Of a DNA stretch of 64,000 nucleotides, positions 8,566-46,428 are shown in pieces. Position 1 is the first letter of the stretch; each line of letters starts with the position of its first letter. A program made the position numbers and the translations under genes. The stretch is taken from positions 248,001 through 312,000 of the IMG/VR virus record IMGVR_UViG_3300042482_000702; one strand, given 5' to 3'. The notes under the pieces are model-generated. The model saw only the letters and a program-made list of their open reading frames with translations, searched no databases and was not told the origin of the DNA.

Positions 8566-10617
8566 ATGATAGAATCTATGGATGGTAACGAAGGAAGAGG
8601 TAAGAACACAAGTGTTTCCGAATCAGCAACACCAGTGTTAGACAATTTTAGTCGAGATTTAATAAAATTGGCTGAAGAAGGGAAATTAGACCCTGTTATT
8701 GGTAGAGAAAGTGAAATAACGAGAATTGCTCAAATTCTTTCTCGTAGAAAGAAAAATAACCCAATTATTATTGGAGAACCTGGTTGTGGTAAAACCGCCA
8801 TTGTTGAGGGTCTCGCAATTAAAATCTATAATGGGGATTGTCCAAGAAATTTAATGGATAAAAGAATCGTATCATTAGATATGACATCAATCGTTGCCGG
8901 AACAAAGTATCGTGGTCAATTTGAAGAACGAATGAAAGTAATTATAGAAGAATTACAAAACGCACCAAACATCATCGTATTCATTGATGAGATTCATACC
9001 ATTGTTGGAGCGGGAAATTCATCAGGTTCAATGGACGCATCAAACATCTTTAAACCAGCTCTTGCTCGTGGAGAAATCCAATGTGTTGGAGCAACAACAT
9101 TAGATGAATATAGAAAAAACTTTGAGAAAGATGGAGCGTTAGAAAGACGATTCCAAAAAGTTGTTGTTGATTCACCAACCAAAGGGGAAACATTACTTAT
9201 CTTGGAACAATCAAAGGAAAAATATGAATCTTACCACAAGGTAACTTATTCCAACGAGATTTTAAATCTATGTGTGGATTTAGCAGAAAGATATATCACC
9301 GATAGAGAATTTCCGGACAAGGCGTTTGACATCTTGGATGAGGTTGGGGCGAGAAGTCAGGTTGAAATTAAAATGCCGGATTCAATTGAAAAATTGAAAT
9401 TACAAGCGTCCGATATTAAACAACAAAAAATGGATGTTGTTAAACGACAAGATTACGAAGAAGCGGCAAATTTACGAGATAAAGAAAAGAGAGTTTTAAC
9501 CAAACTTGAAACTGAAAAGAAAAAGTTTGAAGAGGAACTCTTAACTAATAAAAAAGAGATTACTGTTGATTTGGTTTATGAGGTTGTATCCAATATTACC
9601 AAAATTCCAATCACCAAATTAAACTCTGATGAGACTAAATTATTATCCGAAATGGAAAATAATTTATCCGATAAGGTTATTGGACAATCTGATGCAGTTT
9701 CAAAAATTGCCAAGTCAATTAGAAGAAGTAGAATCGGGATTAAAGACCCAAACAAACCAATTGGTTCATTTATCTTTTTAGGTTCAACTGGTGTTGGTAA
9801 AACATATCTAGCAAAACAACTCGCCAAACAAATGTTCGGTAGTGAGGATAATATGATTCGTGTGGATATGTCGGAATACCAAGAAAAACATACCATATCA
9901 AGATTAATCGGAGCTCCTAGCGGATATGTTGGGTATGAAGATGGGGGACAACTAACCGAACAGGTTAAAAATAAACCATATTCTGTTATTCTATTTGATG
10001 AGGTTGAGAAAGCTCATAAAGATATTTTCTCCACACTTCTTCAAGTATTGGATGAAGGACACTTAACCGATAGTTTAGGTAAGAAAATCAATTTCAAAAA
10101 TTGTGTGATTATTATGACCTCAAATGTTGGTGCCAAAAAATTACAAGATTTTGGTTCAGGTGTTGGTTTTAAAACGGGGGGAAGTGCTTATGTTGAGGAG
10201 GAATATCGTAGAGATGTTTTGAAAAAGGAATTAAAGAAATTCTTTACTCCGGAATTCTTAAATCGTGTGGACGAAATTGTAATCTTTAATTCTTTAGTGA
10301 AAGAAGATGTTAAAAAAATTGTGAAATTAGAATTGGATATTCTAACTAAACGATTAACCGGAATGAAATATAACATCACTTTTGATGGTAGTGTTTTAGA
10401 TTTAATATCTGATGTTGGATTTGATGAGACATACGGAGCAAGACCGATTAAAAGAGCTATCCAAGATAAACTTGAGGATTTTGTATCTGAAGAGATTATA
10501 AAAGGAAATGTTGTAGAAAACACTCCATACACAATCACCTCTGTTGATAAGGAAATTAAATTTCAAGAGGTTGTTGAAGTTGTGAAAAAGACAAGAAAGA
10601 AAAAGGGGGATTTATAA
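8566..10617 (+). CDS. clpC: ClpC-type AAA+ unfoldase lacking the N-terminal Clp-repeat domain
   Basis: Two Walker A motifs ([16 protein letters not shown]), pore loops KYRG and GYVG, UVR-like [11 protein letters not shown], ClpP-docking-like GVGF. Confidence 0.9.
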
Positions 10618-13531: not shown

Positions 13532-13940
13532 GGGAGTGACACGGAATTGACTATTCGTAATAGTTATTCGGGGCACGTAGTGAGATGTTCTCTATCACTT
13601 AAATCTATGGGTACAACAATTTAGACGGAAACGTTTTAAACAAAATGGCTCTAGTAGGTCTTGTACGTCAAGATGAGCTTGTGAACGTAGCGTAAGCAAA
13701 CACACATTGGGGTCGACGGATATGTGTACCTAGCAACAGAAATATCTTAAGGTGTGATACCACCCGAAGAGTGTCAAGGTCTCGTTTGAGGGTCTACCTA
13801 TTAAAGTGAACCTCCCACAGTTGTAGGTAATGATGGAAAAATTAGAACCTTCTATTTGTCAGTTGAGAATTAACTGAATAAACGTGTAGTCCTTAATAGG
13901 TAATACAAATAACACTTGGGTTCGAGTCCCAACACTTCCA
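13532..13940 (+). ncRNA. ssrA: tmRNA
   Basis: Acceptor GGGAGTG/CACTTCC with G3-U70; 5' GGAATTGAC; T-arm TTGGG-TTCGAGT-CCCAA; internal tag ORF 13627..13695; smpB nearby. Confidence 0.92.
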
Positions 13941-14065
13941 CGTCCACTGGAGAGTCCCAACACCTCCACACAAAAAAGAGACCTAAATGGTCTCTTTTTT
14001 TATTGATAATCACCAATAAAAAAACCACCCGAAGGTGGCTTATTATCAGTTCAAATGTTTATTTT

Positions 14066-14998: not shown

Positions 14999-15883
14999 GG
15001 CTTAATACGATGAGAATACTCGTCTTATTGAGAATCTTCGGAAGGATTATTGTTTCCCTTCGTTTCCACCATCTTTTGAATGGTAACCCTCATTGCCGAT
15101 TGGTTAGACCAATCACTCCTTGAGATATCATCTACTCTCTCATTATTCAACTCTCTTTAACCTTGCGAGCTAACTCCGGATTCGACTCCGTAGAGGTTTT
15201 TGGCGAGAATACATTCAGACTTGCGGTCATCCTGTGCAACGAACGGCTCGTTACTATGTAGGCAACTTGTCGACGATACCTGGTAAACATTTTTGCTATT
15301 GTCTATTTAGTTTTTCACCATATGAAAATAGTTAATGTGTTGTGGATGTATTCAGGAAGTAGTTTACCGTAAGCTCCCTAACCTTTTGGGTTAAAGAATA
15401 CTAAACTTCCCGATGAGATATCCCTATCTCCAAATTTCAAGAATTCTTCAAATCAATATCTTGGTAGATATTTGATAGGGATAAAGTCAGCACCACCTGT
15501 TACTTAATCTTGCCTTTCGGCGTTAAGATTCCTTTTATTTTGGAACCCGCAATTATAAGGTCGGATAACCCTATTTCTTACTTGATTCCTATGGGTTCTT
15601 CTTATCTTGATTCCTCAATCAACCGGACAATCCACATTGCCAAGTTAGTATTCCATTTCCCTACGAAGTTATCCTCGGTACTACAGGACTACTAATATCC
15701 CACTTGCTTACTCGAGTTCGGTTTCCCAAACCACAAAATCACTAACACAAATGATTTCATTTTATCCCCGTTTCCGGGATTATTTAAAGATGATAAGCCA
15801 CCTATTATCTTTGATACAACACCGAAGTGTTATAATGGATAATCTAAAATTTCTAAGAACGTCTTTAAGGTTTCCCTTAATTG
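14963..15883 (-). ncRNA. Large (~920 nt) structured ncRNA, GOLLD-like candidate
   Basis: No credible ORF; own TAnnTTTG promoter (15889-15896) and terminator; many minus-strand GNRA/UUCG-capped hairpins. Confidence 0.7.
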
Positions 15884-16044: not shown

Positions 16045-16136
16045 GTGGTATCAGATGGATTCGAACCACCGGCACAGGGTTTTTCAGAACCCTTGCTCTA
16101 CCAAGGAAGATAAATCTCCCACTGAGCTATAATACC
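16045..16136 (-). tRNA. Atypical tRNA-Phe-like (GAA) with a hairpin inserted in the D-loop and an irregular anticodon loop
   Basis: Acceptor GGTATTA/TGATACC, normal T-arm, D-loop insert GGGAGATTTATCTTCC, anticodon arm AGGGT-TCTGAAAA-ACCCT. Confidence 0.6.
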
Positions 16137-16530: not shown

Positions 16531-16607
16531 TAGTCAGAACAGGATTCGAACCTGTGTACCCTCGTATGAGTTCGTCATACCGTGCATCTCCAATGTGCTA
16601 CCTGACT
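16531..16607 (-). ncRNA. tRNA-like RNA with non-canonical anticodon arm
   Basis: Acceptor AGTCAGG/TCTGACT and perfect T-arm ACAGG-TTCGAAT-CCTGT; anticodon arm TATGA-CGAAC-TCATA lacks U33. Confidence 0.55.
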
Positions 16608-19874: not shown

Positions 19875-20900
19875 TTACAACTTTTTAAATTCCGGTCTGA
19901 TTAAATTCCATATAATCTCGGAGTAATCCTTACGGTCAAACATTCTAAATAAAATACCTGATAAATGTTTAGGTTGTTCTGACACCCACTGAGCAAATTC
20001 TTTTCTATCTGTGATGGGTTCTTTATCGTTATACTTACCATACATTTTACCATCAAATCTTTTACCAGCATCTTCGGATATTGACATAAAAAAATATCGC
20101 AATTCTTTTACATAATTTTTAATTTTAGTGTAAAATTCATCCGGAACATCTTTTAATAATTCCATCACATCTTCACCATTTTTTAAATACTCCCAAATAC
20201 CTGTTGTAGATACATTAGTCATGATTTTGTGAAGACGCAAATATTCAATACCTTTAACCTTAACCCTATCCCCATTTGAGAACTTCACCACAAACCCCTC
20301 TTGGTCGTTTTTAACCATTTCTTTTAATTGTTTGTAGTCATTGATACCATCGTATTTTTTAACGACATCAAAACCCCATTCATCCCAATCTGTGATGTCA
20401 TAATCTTTACCCCAATTATCGAATGCTCCCAATAGGACCAGTTTCTCTTCACCTTTATAATCCAAAACAATTCTGTTTTCCGGGTAGATAATCTCAAAAC
20501 AAAATGTCATATGTCTGAACATTATGTCAGTGTTGTATTTCTGTAAGAGTTCGGTAGCCTTGATTGCTTGGTCTGATGTAAATGAACCACGAGTGGCAAC
20601 CACCCATTGACCCTGATACCAAAATACGATACCTAATGAACCATCCATTTTTTCATAAACCTCAAAGGTTTCAGTTGGAGTATATTTTCCTTCTTCTATG
20701 TTAAAGAATTTTTTGAATGGTGTTGCAACAATGTCTCCTTTGTCGTCAGTAACTAAACCTCTACACATAAGGGTCACCTCATCCCATAGGTTCTCGTACT
20801 GAACTTTTTCAGAGTAGTTCCATATGGTTAATGGAAGTGTTGGATGTACTTGTTTGTAAAGTAATCCGTCTTCGTAATATTTGTTTAGTTTTTCTAACAT
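19875..20900 (-). CDS. T4 Rnl1-like RNA ligase
   Basis: Motif I EKMDGS, KKFFN, FEII, EGFVV, VKVK. Confidence 0.9.
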   Translation of the reverse strand: MLEKLNKYYEDGLLYKQVHPTLPLTIWNYSEKVQYENLWDEVTLMCRGLVTDDKGDIVATPFKKFFNIEEGKYTPTETFEVYEKMDGSLGIVFWYQGQWVVATRGSFTSDQAIKATELLQKYNTDIMFRHMTFCFEIIYPENRIVLDYKGEEKLVLLGAFDNWGKDYDITDWDEWGFDVVKKYDGINDYKQLKEMVKNDQEGFVVKFSNGDRVKVKGIEYLRLHKIMTNVSTTGIWEYLKNGEDVMELLKDVPDEFYTKIKNYVKELRYFFMSISEDAGKRFDGKMYGKYNDKEPITDRKEFAQWVSEQPKHLSGILFRMFDRKDYSEIIWNLIRPEFKKL

Positions 20901-21038
20901 AATTTTATTTTTTCTTTTTCTTTTTTTTAATAGGTCTTTCAGGTCTTTCTAAATATCTTGGGGGTAAAGGGATTTGTCTTCCCCCTTTGAATACATTCCC
21001 ATTTCCCATCATGAGGAAGGACCAAATAAGCCACCCTA

Positions 21039-21422
21039 TCATAATTTTATTTCAAACCTATCTTTCATTTGTACTAATTTATCCTCCGGAACTCCATGTT
21101 CATTAACACCACCGTGTCTATTTTCTACAATGATGGAGAATACCTTATATCCGTATTCTTTTGCCAAGTCATAGTAAGGTTGCATCTCCCATTCCTGAGT
21201 AAATGTGTTTGATACTACCACTCTTTTGCTTTTGTTTCCCATAAAAACTCTCACAGCGTTTTGACACCAAGCATGAGCCTCTTTTAATTTAGAACCATCA
21301 AATTCGTACTTACCTTCGTAGGTAAAGTATTTATCTGCTTCCATATGCAACCCCCCTAATGATTCCGCCAATGTTGTTTTACCTGAGCCGGGACAACCAC
21401 GAACTAAAAATAATTCTTTCAT
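21039..21422 (-). CDS. P-loop kinase (polynucleotide-kinase-like, AAA_33)
   Basis: GCPGSGKTT, EAD, VVSNT, HGVP. Confidence 0.85.
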   Translation of the reverse strand: MKELFLVRGCPGSGKTTLAESLGGLHMEADKYFTYEGKYEFDGSKLKEAHAWCQNAVRVFMGNKSKRVVVSNTFTQEWEMQPYYDLAKEYGYKVFSIIVENRHGGVNEHGVPEDKLVQMKDRFEIKL

Positions 21423-21423
21423 A

Positions 21424-21705
21424 TTAATTTTTTAAATATTTTACAATCTTTTCAAATTTTTCGGTATCATCCGAATTAATAATAAACTCATCAAACGCTC
21501 CGTACCTACATTGATAACCAAAAATATATTTCAAACCATAACTAACTCTTTCCCAAAAAGGTCGTTTAGTTAAATGAGTATGGATATATACCATCGGATA
21601 TTTCACACCATCAATCTCGTCTTCATCATACATTACCACCATTTGATGTTCTGTGTTATGACAAGAACAGATGAATAAATCTTTTTGTGTTTGAGTAATT
21701 TTCAT
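21424..21705 (-). CDS. Hypothetical protein
   Basis: ORF in operon. Confidence 0.6.
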   Translation of the reverse strand: MKITQTQKDLFICSCHNTEHQMVVMYDEDEIDGVKYPMVYIHTHLTKRPFWERVSYGLKYIFGYQCRYGAFDEFIINSDDTEKFEKIVKYLKN

Positions 21706-21706
21706 A

Positions 21707-22369
21707 TTATTTTCTTTTTCGACCTTCGTCGGTTATCATATCATCTGTGTGATGGTCATCATCCATGTTTGATTTAATTTCTCTCAATTTTACAATCTTA
21801 ATAACATTGTCTAATGAGTATGGTGCAAAAAACAATGAACCATCAATACCAACATCCATTCTACGACCTTTACCAAAGATTTTACCCGTTGGGAGATGTA
21901 CATGTCCATGGAGGTGAATATGACCCTTATTTAACCCATCCCAAGAATCAATAGGGTAGTGCATTAAAACCAAAGTATCAAATTTATACATCAATTTTGT
22001 GTAGTGATTGACACTTGAAAACAATTCCTGACAATCCCCTCGGTTATTTTCAATGTGATGGTCATGATTACCCAATATAAGGTGAATCTCTTGACATACA
22101 ATTCTATCTCTAAAAATTTTCACATTTTCAAATCCGCCAAAACTCCAATCACCCAAATGAATCAAAACATCATCTTGACCAACAACACTATTAATACCGT
22201 TTACGATAGCGTCGTTCATCTCCCCAATATTACTAAAATCTCTTGTTTGAGCAATTGGAACACTCCCATCCGGAAGTCTCCATTCTGTTACACCACGACA
22301 TATATTCTTATGTCCAAAGTGAGTGTCGGATATAATCCAAACTTTTCTATCTTTATCTATCTTAATCAT
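21707..22369 (-). CDS. Calcineurin-like metallophosphoesterase
   Basis: SDTHFGH, HLGD, GNHD, HGHVH. Confidence 0.9.
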   Translation of the reverse strand: MIKIDKDRKVWIISDTHFGHKNICRGVTEWRLPDGSVPIAQTRDFSNIGEMNDAIVNGINSVVGQDDVLIHLGDWSFGGFENVKIFRDRIVCQEIHLILGNHDHHIENNRGDCQELFSSVNHYTKLMYKFDTLVLMHYPIDSWDGLNKGHIHLHGHVHLPTGKIFGKGRRMDVGIDGSLFFAPYSLDNVIKIVKLREIKSNMDDDHHTDDMITDEGRKRK

Positions 22370-22859
22370 ACTGCAAATCTAATTCTTTTTTTCCAAACCA
22401 AAAAGGTTTTTCTCTGTTTTTCCAAGACGCTAAATTAATTTTAGCACCCATATAATAATTTCTATAAGATTCCACAACAGAATCCACCTTAAACTCATCC
22501 GGCATTGCCATTGCTGGTTGAGTAAAACCAATATCCGGGATGTTAGGTCTATTTAAAATACACCATAAAACCACTTCAATTGATTTATGTTTTTTACCAT
22601 ACCTGTGGGTATATTCTTTACCTAATTCCAAACCCAATTCACACAAATACAAATAATTTGATAAACTCTGACGAGTCCATACCGCACAAGGGTGATTTTT
22701 ATGAGACAACTTGTACGGTACTTGGTCGTTAACTTGGTCGGTTACGTGATGAACCGAACATAATAATTGAGCGGTTTCCAAAATCATTTTAACTACGTGT
22801 TTATCTACGTGGTATTGAGCCGATAGTTTAGGATTCTCATCCAAGAAAAATATATTCAT
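22362..22859 (-). CDS. Pyrimidine-dimer DNA glycosylase family protein
   Basis: MNIFFLD...DKHVVKMILETAQLL...HKNHPC...EYTHRYGKKH. Confidence 0.8.
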   Translation of the reverse strand: MNIFFLDENPKLSAQYHVDKHVVKMILETAQLLCSVHHVTDQVNDQVPYKLSHKNHPCAVWTRQSLSNYLYLCELGLELGKEYTHRYGKKHKSIEVVLWCILNRPNIPDIGFTQPAMAMPDEFKVDSVVESYRNYYMGAKINLASWKNREKPFWFGKKELDLQYD

Positions 22860-23037
22860 TATTTATTTTTAAATATTACGGGACAAAGATACAACTATTT
22901 TTTTTTATTCCAAGGGATTGAACCTTTTTTTCTTCCTGTTTTTTCTATACAGATTTCATCAATTTTATCAAATTTATGATATCTCCAAATAAAACCTCCG
23001 GAACTTTTTGACTTACCTAACGAACAATAATGTTTGG

Positions 23038-23496
23038 TTATTTAATAGGTATTCGAACCCTAACACAGGTCTCAGGTTGTTTTTCATTTTTTAAGAAATT
23101 GTTAATCCAACCACAAATATTATGTGCTCCAACAGGATTTGCTGAATGAACATATATCGTTGGAAAAGTAAATTTACCGTCTTTTTTTTCATTTCTTGTC
23201 ATATTAATTCTTTCCGGAAATTCATAATAAAATTGATTAACCAAGAATTTAGCAGCATCATATCCAGTTTTCTCGTTAATATTGTTATAATCCAAAGTGT
23301 AATTTGGCGAGACATTATCAAAATACTCTTTCATAGCTGAATCACCCAAATCGTGGTCTAAGGAGATTGTGCTAATATTTTCTAACCCAATTTTATTAAT
23401 TTCATTAACAAAATCGTCGTAATCTCTTACAACAATCCAATCATCTCCGGTTGGAGTTCTTACATCATCGAGATAAATTCTACAGAGTGTTTTCAT
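23038..23496 (-). CDS. Cyclic-phosphate-processing receiver-domain protein
   Basis: YLDDVR, ISLDHDLG, TGYD, HSANPVG. Confidence 0.8.
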   Translation of the reverse strand: MKTLCRIYLDDVRTPTGDDWIVVRDYDDFVNEINKIGLENISTISLDHDLGDSAMKEYFDNVSPNYTLDYNNINEKTGYDAAKFLVNQFYYEFPERINMTRNEKKDGKFTFPTIYVHSANPVGAHNICGWINNFLKNEKQPETCVRVRIPIK

Positions 23497-34308: not shown

Positions 34309-34381
34309 TGGTCCCGGAGAATTACGATATCCCGACTTCTACATTATGAGTGTAGCACTCTAACCTCTGAGTTACGAGACC
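34309..34381 (-). tRNA. tRNA CAT (Ile2 or Met)
   Basis: Cloverleaf; loop CTCATAA; T-loop ATCGTAA. Confidence 0.8.
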
Positions 34382-37754: not shown

Positions 37755-38108
37755 GTTTTGTATTACCAATATGTCAATTAACTTGTTTGTTTTTGATGGT
37801 ACAAAGATAATGCTTTATTTCATTCCACCAAACTTATTCTTCAATAATATTATTCAGAACCAAATCTAATGCGTGGTCTTCATCCCACTCTGATTCATCA
37901 ACAACATTTTTTAATCCGTAGGTTACTCCCAATATCGGTGAGTAATCCATAACCAATTCTTCTCTAATCATACCTGTTATTATTTTTTAGTTATTTTATC
38001 CACATATTTTTTACCTACGGCTACTAATAAAATAAAACATATCAATAATCCACTAATAATAACCACCAATTGTTCTCCTGTATATTCTTCCATATCTTTA
38101 ATTTGTTT

Positions 38109-38395: not shown

Positions 38396-38532
38396 AAAAA
38401 AAAAATCCACCTTTTTTTGAAGATGGATTTTTAAATATTTTTTTACTTAAATATATATCATACCATCGTCTTCCAAGTTGTATCTCTACCCTCAGTTCCC
38501 GCTATCGTAAGTAATATGTTTAAAGTTTGCAT
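38396..38532 (-). promoter_or_regulatory. Leader peptide (38458..38532) plus terminator: putative attenuator
   Basis: 24-aa ORF MQTLNILLTIAGTEGRDTTWKTMV; GAAGA/GATGG in the ORF can pair with the terminator arm CCATCTTC. Confidence 0.5.
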
Positions 38533-38662
38533 TTTTTGTGTTATTGTAATTTCTAATAAATATACGACATTTTGTGAAAGTGTCAAGTGGTTTTAAAATT
38601 ATTTTTTAAACTTAATCATAATTTAAGATATTTATAGTAAATAAACTTTTAAAAATTCAATT

Positions 38663-45176: not shown

Positions 45177-45249
45177 TGGGGACTACCGGTTACGCTCCGG
45201 TCTCCTTGATTCTTCAGACCAATGCTTTCACTAGATTAGCTTAATCCCC
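45177..45249 (-). tRNA. tRNA-Phe(GAA)
   Basis: Loop CTGAAGA; T-loop AGCGTAA. Confidence 0.85.
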
Positions 45250-45479: not shown

Positions 45480-45550
45480 TACCTCGTGATGGTTATGCTC
45501 CACCGCCATTTGTATGTAAAACAAATACGCTCCTATTACGCCAACGAGGT
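45480..45550 (-). tRNA. tRNA-Val(TAC)
   Basis: Loop TTTACAT; T-loop AGCATAA. Confidence 0.8.
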
Positions 45551-45841: not shown

Positions 45842-45847
45842 AAATTG

Positions 45848-45929
45848 CGGAAGAGACAGGATTCGAACCTGCAAAGCTGTTACACCCGATAGTTTTCAAG
45901 ACTACTTAACGACCACTGTCCACTCTTCC
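45848..45929 (-). tRNA. tRNA-Ser(TGA)
   Basis: Loop CTTGAAA; long variable arm; G73. Confidence 0.88.
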
Positions 45930-46019
45930 ATTTTATTCTTACCAATATGTCAAATAACTAATTCCTTTATTTTGATGGGACAAAGGTAATCCTTTTTTTT
46001 TAACTTCCAAACTTTTTTA

Positions 46020-46201
46020 TAAAAAAAAATCCCGAACTTTTTGAGTTCAGGATTTTGGTTATATTTTATGTTTAACTTTTATATTGTCGTTAAATCATTT
46101 AATAAACTATCTGAACTTGTATGCGAAATACGCGGATACGAACAATTACTAAATTGTTGGTTCCAAATCACGACATTCATATGTTTATTAGTATTTTTCA
46201 T
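46020..46201 (-). promoter_or_regulatory. Leader peptide (46079..46201) plus terminator/antiterminator: putative attenuator
   Basis: 40-aa ORF; AGTTCAG in the ORF is complementary to the terminator arm CTGAACT; upstream TTTG...TAAGTTTG promoter. Confidence 0.55.
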
Positions 46202-46428
46202 TTTTCTTTTTTTTGTGGTATCTCTACCTGTGTTTCTTATAATTATATCAAACTTACGAAAAGTTTAAATAGTTGTCAAATTTTTTTCAATAATTTTATT
46301 TAACTCCTCTATGTGGTACTCCTCCATCCATTCAGCAATTTTACTGTTGGTATCAGCAAAAACACCAAATTCCTTGAAATGTTCCTCTTGTTTTTTATCT
46401 AAAAAAATTTTAGCATTAATGTCGTCCA

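Follow-up and report, generated by a model that had tools for sequence, protein, structure and literature searches.

A putative leader-ORF attenuator preceding the tRNA gene array of an uncultured freshwater phage

At the head of the tRNA gene array of an uncultured 322-kb freshwater phage, a conserved promoter, a 40-codon reading frame and an intrinsic terminator are arranged such that the 5′ arm of the terminator can alternatively pair with the reading frame. This arrangement looks like a ribosome-dependent transcription attenuator, which would let more transcription into the tRNA genes when translation falters, although the evidence is entirely computational, and we assign a probability of roughly 0.55 to this reading. 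The unit is found in 88 related loci, and the alternative pairing is maintained by compensatory changes that are made at the expense of the terminator itself. The observation that prompted this analysis, namely a promoter, a 40-codon ORF, a terminator with a U tract and an AGTTCAG segment in the ORF complementary to the 5′ arm, is confirmed in every part. Its interpretation, in which a ribosome stalled early in the leader frees the antiterminator and boosts tRNA output as a sensor of host tRNA destruction, is supported only in part.

Genomic setting and parts of the leader

The window, which is the whole stretch of 64,000 nucleotides analysed here, comprises bases 248001-312000 of a 322,477-bp contig with 31.5% G+C. 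The contig is a large phage that encodes a T4-type large terminase (1006-2775), a ClpB-like ATPase, a tmRNA, a GOLLD RNA and 21 tRNAs according to ARAGORN, or 24 according to Rfam. A comparison with GenBank phages returned no related record but only tRNA-level hits. The leader is located on the minus strand, as are all tRNAs found by ARAGORN, and its parts are collected in Table 1. The promoter P1 matches the Bacteroidota sigma-A −33/−7 pattern, in which TAnnTTTG is the −7 box of flavobacteria (PMC9723704), and it is nearly invariant in 49 distinct copies. The ORF is preceded by an A-rich stretch without a Shine-Dalgarno sequence and is separated from the terminator by a 22-nt spacer.

Table 1. 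Coordinates of the leader, its flanking elements and the related second cassette (positions in the window)
Feature	Position	Strand	Description
Promoter P1	46249..46280	−	−33 TTTG (46280-46277), 20-nt spacer, −7 TAAGTTTG (46256-46249); overlaps TGaTATAAT at 46250-46242, with TATAAT at 46247-46242 adjoining; also found as a sigma-70-like site TTTAAA-16-TATAAT with TG
5′-UTR hairpin	46217..46228	−	GGUA-GAGA-UACC, GNRA-type loop, folded in the MFE structure; loop variants GAGA, GAAA and GUGA in relatives; same 11-mer in the second cassette at 38490-38480
Leader ORF	46079..46201	−	40 codons, MKNTNKHMNVVIWNQQFSNCSYPRISHTSSDSLLNDLTTI, ATG to TAA (46081-46079), preceded by A-rich AAAAAAAAGAAAA
HP1	46141..46158	−	Perfect 7-bp palindrome AACAATT-TAGT-AATTGTT inside codons 15-21
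Rare-codon cluster	46124..46141	−	Codons 21-26: TCG TAT CCG CGT ATT TCG
Antiterminator 5′ strand (region 2)	46104..46117	−	AGTTCAG (46117-46111, codons 29-31), 2-nt bulge, 5 more nt; perfect complement of AGTTCAG is CTGAACT at 46050-46044; 12 pairs with 46056-46044
HP2	46071..46094	−	Small hairpin TTTAAC / GTTAAA at the apex of the antiterminator, stop codon in its loop
Intrinsic terminator	46021..46056	−	5′ arm 46056-46044 (region 3), loop CAAAA 46043-46039, 3′ arm 46038-46026 (region 4); arms AAAATCCTGAACT / AGTTCGGGATTTT, 13 pairs including one U-G; U9 tract 46029-46021
Predicted promoter P2	45981..46011	−	TTTG 46011-46008, N19, TACCTTTG 45988-45981; also written as TTTGG (46011-46007), N, TTACCTTTGT ending at 45981/45980
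Conserved box	45939..45958	−	GTTATTTGACATATTGGTAA in the pre-tRNA 5′ leader; conserved in relatives, also before tRNA-Glu near 37780
tRNA-Ser(UGA)	45847..45929	−	First gene of the tRNA array
Antisense ORF (rejected)	46041-46268	+	75 aa
Second cassette	38586-38401		TTGACA-16-TATATT promoter; 24-codon ORF (38531-38457); 13-bp terminator (38432-38401); then a P2-class promoter

Conservation of the unit at the head of tRNA arrays

A search with the neighbouring 543-aa protein found two IMG/VR contigs, in which the stretch from P1 to the tRNA start is identical to the window apart from short indels, while the flanks diverge. A 31-mer of the leader found 10 viral contigs, the peptide has 16 cluster representatives, all unnamed, and back-translated patterns found 76 metagenome loci, mostly from lakes. 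BLAST showed that the element of about 420 nt aligns at 69-99.5% identity in all 88 loci, and 58 full-length copies were reduced to 49 distinct sequences, which were aligned. One 2.7-kb contig binned as Saccharibacteria carries the core of the leader, which we judge to be a binning artefact rather than evidence on the host. The genes upstream differ between lineages, whereas the next gene downstream is a tRNA in 66 of 66 loci with enough downstream DNA, being tRNA-Ser(UGA) in 62 and tRNA-Pro(UGG) in 3, at a median distance of 89 nt. Within the phage's own genome, no second copy of the leader was found and only P2-like promoters recur.

No Rfam family covers the leader at the gathering threshold, and the relaxed hits up to E = 10, such as Thr_leader at 25.5 bits against a cutoff of 55, are terminator-driven noise. 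In particular, no match to the T-box covariance model was obtained. An antisense ORF across the unit was rejected as a gene because it is open in only about half of the copies.

The leader reading frame

The ORF is open from ATG to TAA in all 49 distinct copies, with lengths of 35-41 codons, and the other two sense frames are closed. The clean indels inside it are 3 nt long, that is, one at codon 10/11 in the copy from locus L087, an extra codon before codon 29 in L059 and L087, and an extra codon in L065, L066 and L072. In contrast, the spacer after the stop varies from 19 to 32 nt in steps that are not multiples of three. However, the search patterns favoured copies that keep the N-terminus or the core, and selection on the protein appears weak. 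The NG86 dN/dS is about 0.46, the minimal changes by codon position are 12, 25 and 26, so that positions 2 and 3 vary about equally, and the distinct-state counts are 14 synonymous against 43 non-synonymous. These values are too weak to prove protein-level selection. The last five or so residues are free to change, although a peptide core is conserved at the amino-acid level. Codons 15-23 (CAA CAA TTT AGT AAT TGT TCG TAT CCG) behave differently, in that they are essentially invariant at all three positions although synonymous sites elsewhere flip often. Collectively, this is the pattern expected of a leader whose act of translation matters, overlaid with constraints at the RNA or codon level.

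The invariant stretch contains the HP1 palindrome, for which the lack of variation precludes covariation analysis, and which could be a pause hairpin, a binding site or a codon constraint. This raises the possibility of a factor-dependent attenuator, riboswitch-like or protein-dependent, in which the core (HP1 plus a small GCG..CGC hairpin) would bind a phage or host protein, a tRNA or a small molecule, and that binding, rather than the ribosome, would decide between antiterminator and terminator, with the ORF being secondary. The weak protein-level constraint outside the core is compatible with this view. We nevertheless consider it unlikely, because the ORF, its ATG, its in-frame indels and a stop inside the antiterminator are kept in all 49 copies, no Rfam family including T-box matches, and the core does not overlap the switching helices.

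No run of regulatory codons was found in the leader, and its overall codon adaptation is ordinary (40th percentile). The rare-codon cluster at codons 21-26 lies in the lowest 3.6% of 6-codon windows from the phage's own long ORFs, which is not significant after multiple testing. TCG21 and CCG23 are kept in 47/47 copies, and NCG codons make up 4 of 40 in the leader against 2.3% genome-wide. Phage tRNAs Ser(UGA), Pro(UGG) and Arg(ACG) can read the codons of the cluster, and a ribosome paused there would end just before region 2. This is suggestive only. CGT and TCG also form the GCG..CGC hairpin, and an arrest peptide (W13..QQFSNCSYP(R)) or a factor binding HP1 are alternatives.

Alternative pairing and its covariation

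In the window sequence alone, a complement of 7 nt or more to the 5′ arm occurs in 2.2% of dinucleotide shuffles of the 185 nt upstream, the duplex energy of −9.0 kcal/mol is reached in 2.6% of shuffles, and the whole leader folds with z = −5.5. Comparison with relatives makes the case much stronger. In the alignment, 96.9% of cells of the terminator are paired, with compensatory changes at three pairs in the lower stem. The 7-bp alternative helix between AGTTCAG and the 5′ arm, the conservation of which had been named beforehand as a test of the idea, is 99.7% paired. RNAalifold recovers this helix in the consensus and extends it by five pairs across a 2-nt bulge. The resulting 12-pair helix is 97.5% paired, with changes on both sides at 4 pairs and in 21 cells against 5.8 ± 1.8 in shuffles, and it falls to 11-59% paired when the partner is slid.

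The most telling case is found in nine copies, which carry GATTCAG in the ORF (Ser29 to Asp) together with CTGAATC in the arm. The first loop base also changes from C to U, adding an A-U pair to the alternative helix, while the 3′ arm of the terminator stays AGTTCAGG. The terminator therefore loses its top pair and weakens the next one; pair 181-190 is broken in the 10 copies that carry CTGAATC, and pair 180-191 becomes U-G in 9. The 5′ arm thus follows the ORF segment rather than its terminator partner. Apart from columns tied together by one shared indel, this is the strongest coupling between non-neighbouring columns in the alignment, with a normalised MI of 0.81 against 0.53 or less with any other column. 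On a tree built with those columns masked, parsimony places three changes of the arm dinucleotide, each together with the ORF dinucleotide, and the single mismatch intermediate, L032 (AGT with ATC), lies within a group that holds both states. The tree rests on about 200 nt with recombination, so the count of three is approximate.

It could be argued that the complementarity has no function, AGTTCAG being a chance or duplication-derived copy of the terminator 3′ arm and the covariation reflecting linkage within a few recombining lineages. The shuffle frequency of about 2% and the closely related, mosaic nature of the sequences, which makes independent events few, leave some room for this. However, it appears very unlikely, because four to five coordinated substitutions across 75 nt keep and extend the pairing, and they recur in at least two separated groups with one intermediate.

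Geometry, energetics and proposed mechanism

In RNA cut just after region 3, the 7-bp core of the alternative helix has a mean predicted probability of 0.85, exceeding 0.5 in 44 of 47 distinct copies. The helix is the base of a long irregular hairpin, inside which the stop codon always lies, 15-33 nt after region 2 and 26-39 nt before region 3. In most copies the apex of this hairpin (HP2) encloses the stop, with quite different sequences in different lineages (for example, AAUUUGG/CCAAAUU and UUUAAU/AUUAAA). Column-wise counts for HP2 are blurred by alignment gaps (76.6% paired), and although folding each copy separately shows a hairpin in most copies, it is weak (−2 to −12 kcal/mol). The mean energies are −13.1 kcal/mol for the antiterminator hairpin, −7.1 kcal/mol when a 30-nt ribosome footprint at the stop is held single-stranded, and −14.4 kcal/mol for the terminator hairpin. 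A possible anti-antiterminator pairing between regions 1 and 2 (ATGAAY with GTTCA) is only 4-5 bp, too short and inconsistent to call.

The logic put forward in the original prediction fits this geometry and these energies, and the following sequence of events can be proposed. P1 would start an RNA with a well-initiated ORF, and as the RNA emerges, codons 29-33 (AGUUCAG..GAUUU) would pair with the 5′ arm of the terminator. A ribosome that translates smoothly to the end of the ORF would occupy and melt the upper half of this hairpin, removing half of its stability and sitting between its strands, whereupon the 3′ arm captures the 5′ arm and RNA polymerase stops at the U tract. If the ribosome is absent, late, or stalled before about codon 24, which could reflect scarce charged tRNA, possibly at the rare-codon cluster, the antiterminator, which would form first and rival the terminator, would persist and P1 transcripts would run on through P2 into tRNA-Ser and the array. 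The analysis establishes the parts, their conservation, the covariation of the alternative pairing and the position of the stop, while translation of the ORF, the direction of the switch, a response of termination to translation and any effect on tRNA output are inferences.

The RNA evidence consists only of unstranded Logan contigs from mixed relatives. Several metatranscriptomes hold the leader, and several RNA runs cover it but not the upstream genes, with the leader over-represented relative to its flanks (shares of 0.33-0.36 against 0.08-0.12). Some contigs bridge the terminator (46118-45927, 46159-45847 and 46235-45982). However, the leader is conserved among co-occurring relatives while its flanks are not, contigs break in the assembly graph where relatives differ, and DNA carry-over is possible, so that no conclusion on termination or read-through is drawn.

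A predicted promoter after the terminator and a second cassette

A feature missed by the original prediction is the consensus promoter motif P2 directly after the U tract, about 50 nt before tRNA-Ser. It belongs to a class defined by TTTGG, N, TTAYCTTTGT, with 26 pattern matches in the genome, of which about 20 are well placed before protein genes, the tmRNA, tRNA-Pro and tRNA-Glu, often right after a T tract. A terminator followed by a promoter is thus the usual unit boundary of this phage, and the array would not depend on read-through. The device could only add P1-derived read-through to P2-driven basal expression, and could not switch the array on and off.

For this reason, real weight remains for an alternative, albeit a less likely one, in which P1, the ORF and the terminator form an autonomous cassette that makes a micro-protein and/or a roughly 220-nt RNA, the terminator is an ordinary boundary, and the array is expressed from P2 alone. 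The alternative pairing would then serve the cassette itself, for example by affecting the folding or stability of its RNA or translation near the stop. The compactness of the unit, the conserved peptide core and the over-representation of the leader in RNA runs are in line with this. On the other hand, the 13-bp terminator outcompetes the alternative helix in a terminated transcript, so selection for this pairing, kept at the expense of the terminator's top pairs, makes sense only during transcription. Moreover, the C-terminal third of the peptide is free to vary while a hairpin around the stop is kept, and the unit was never found away from the head of a tRNA array (66/66).

A second cassette heads the tRNA-Glu sub-array (Table 1). 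It is conserved in L005, L006 and L012 with its ORF kept open, and a (G/A)GATGG just before its stop is complementary to the terminator 5′ arm, with L012 changing both sides. In L012 the cassette is followed directly by tRNA-Glu-Ala-Asp, whereas in the window an 89-aa ORF is inserted in between. The original prediction counted the two cassettes as independent instances, but they are related in sequence (global alignment z = 6.5), sharing GGTAGAGATAC, AAACATAT and AAAATCC..GGATTTTTTTTT. They are therefore paralogues rather than independent inventions, but both head tRNA sub-arrays, which supports a link to the arrays.

Comparison with known regulators

Leader-peptide attenuation has been reported in flavobacteria (PMC9723704). 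The leader-peptide attenuators of amino-acid operons (trp, his, leu, thr, pheA) and of pheST (pheM) in Proteobacteria likewise have a promoter-proximal short ORF, an intrinsic terminator and an antiterminator sharing the terminator's 5′ arm, with the ribosome position deciding which structure forms, as is proposed here. The phage leader differs from them in lacking a run of cognate codons and a clear 1:2 anti-antiterminator, so that the default without translation should be read-through. It also differs in the stop codon, which lies in the apex of the antiterminator rather than just before region 2, in the predicted second promoter after the terminator, and in the genes concerned, which are tRNAs in a phage.

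The nearest functional analogue is the class of translation-stress attenuators with leader ORFs in Firmicutes, such as bmrB-bmrCD of Bacillus subtilis, in which a leader ORF of several tens of codons contains alternative stem-loops, read-through rises when ribosomes are slowed generally, and rare codons influence the decision (PMC4191407). There, the output is a drug-efflux pump and the signal an antibiotic, whereas here the output would be tRNAs. T-box riboswitches employ, as the present leader may, transcription antitermination that reports on the tRNA pool and controls genes of the translation apparatus, but a T-box binds uncharged tRNA directly and has no ORF, while the present leader keeps one. 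Arrest-peptide leaders (TnaC, SpeFL, SecM) resemble it in a short leader with a conserved amino-acid sequence and possible stalling that changes downstream expression. However, they act on Rho-dependent termination or on translation and have defined arrest motifs, whereas here no known motif is present, the terminator is intrinsic, and the core is conserved at the nucleotide level too.

Implications

The proposal that the leader senses host tRNA destruction remains a hypothesis, the only circumstantial support for which is an RNA-repair gene set elsewhere in the window, comprising an Rnl1-type ligase, an AAA_33 kinase, a metallophosphoesterase and a cREC domain. In a broader but speculative and rather unlikely version, the leader would be a feedback sensor of the phage's own tRNA supply. 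Its invariant codons, including TCG, CCG and CGT, would make ribosome transit depend on the tRNAs that the array encodes, or on host tRNAs attacked by anticodon nucleases, and depletion would open the attenuator and raise tRNA synthesis. Paralogous cassettes would then guard each tRNA sub-array and, together with the RNA-repair genes, tmRNA and GOLLD in the same region, would form a translation-maintenance module.

Large phages often carry tRNA arrays, but how they control them is little studied. If the attenuator reading is right, it would show a phage-encoded leader-ORF attenuator, attenuation applied to tRNA genes, and such a device in a phage with Bacteroidota-type promoters and no Shine-Dalgarno-type leader; full-text literature searches found no earlier report of any of these. 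The element is short and conserved in dozens of natural variants with built-in compensatory mutants. It would couple tRNA production to the state of translation in the infected cell, which bears on current work on tRNA-targeting defences and phage counter-measures.

Related Cassette, Promoter Class and Neighboring Genes

A cassette related to the leader studied here was found at the head of the tRNA-Glu sub-array, and it consists of a TTGACA-16-TATATT promoter, a 24-codon ORF, and a 13-bp terminator with U10, followed by a promoter of the P2 class, named after the promoter that follows the terminator of the leader. The cassette heads the sub-array directly in L012, one of the related loci, whereas an 89-aa ORF is inserted in the window. 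It shares GGTAGAGATAC and other motifs with the leader. Within the leader ORF itself, a perfect palindrome, AACAATT-TAGT-AATTGTT, is invariant in 47 distinct copies, including at synonymous sites, and could be a pause hairpin, an operator or a protein-binding site. The only hit for the leader core in the species-representative genomes is L089, a short contig (CAZLXA010000047.1, 2668 bp) of a MAG labelled Candidatus Saccharibacteria, which is probably a binning artefact from a low-GC phage fragment.

The recurrent promoter class has the form (A)AAGTTTGG, N15-20, TTAYCTTTGT. The strict TTTG-N18-21-TAnnTTTG motif occurs 51 times in the whole genome, compared to about 15 in shuffles, and the narrower P2-class pattern has 26 matches. 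These promoters are often placed immediately after a terminator T tract. In addition, a conserved box, GTTAWTTGACATATTGGTAA, lies in the transcribed leader between the P2-class promoter and the first tRNA, for both tRNA-Ser and tRNA-Glu. It can pair with the preceding CCATCAAAATAA, and it may be a pre-tRNA processing or stabilising element.

Positions of the features in the window
Feature	Position	Strand	Remark
Related cassette	38401-38586	minus	
ORF of the related cassette	38531-38457	minus	MQTLNILLTIAGTEGRDTTWKTMV
Recurrent promoter class	46011, 42290, 38387, 37832, 17064, 16284, 15919, 14965	minus	15919 precedes the GOLLD RNA
Recurrent promoter class	13487	plus	precedes the tmRNA
Conserved box	45939-45958	minus	tRNA-Ser
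Conserved box	about 37770-37790	minus	tRNA-Glu
Palindrome in the leader ORF	46141-46158	minus	
GOLLD RNA	15007-15413	minus	288 bits
tmRNA	13532-13943	plus	62 bits
tRNA near GOLLD RNA and tmRNA	16045-16136		
tRNA-model match (Rfam)	16531-16607	minus	near GOLLD RNA and tmRNA
tRNA-model match (Rfam)	34309-34381	minus	
tRNA-model match (Rfam)	45177-45249	minus	
tRNA-model match (Rfam)	45480-45550	minus	tRNA-Val(UAC) at the matching position in relatives
ClpB/Hsp104-like double AAA+ ATPase	8566-10617	plus	full-length
RNA-repair-like gene set	19875-23496	minus	
T4 Rnl1-type RNA ligase	19875-20900	minus	
AAA_33 P-loop kinase	21039-21422	minus	
Calcineurin-like phosphoesterase	21707-22369	minus	
Cyclic-phosphate-processing receiver domain protein	23038-23496	minus	

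The phage also encodes a GOLLD RNA and a tmRNA, each of which is preceded by a P2-class promoter and both of which lie near further tRNAs. Four tRNA-model matches obtained by Rfam were not reported by ARAGORN. A ClpB/Hsp104-like ATPase is encoded as well, together with a set of four RNA-repair-like genes on the minus strand. Such a heal-and-seal set is typically used against tRNA cleavage.
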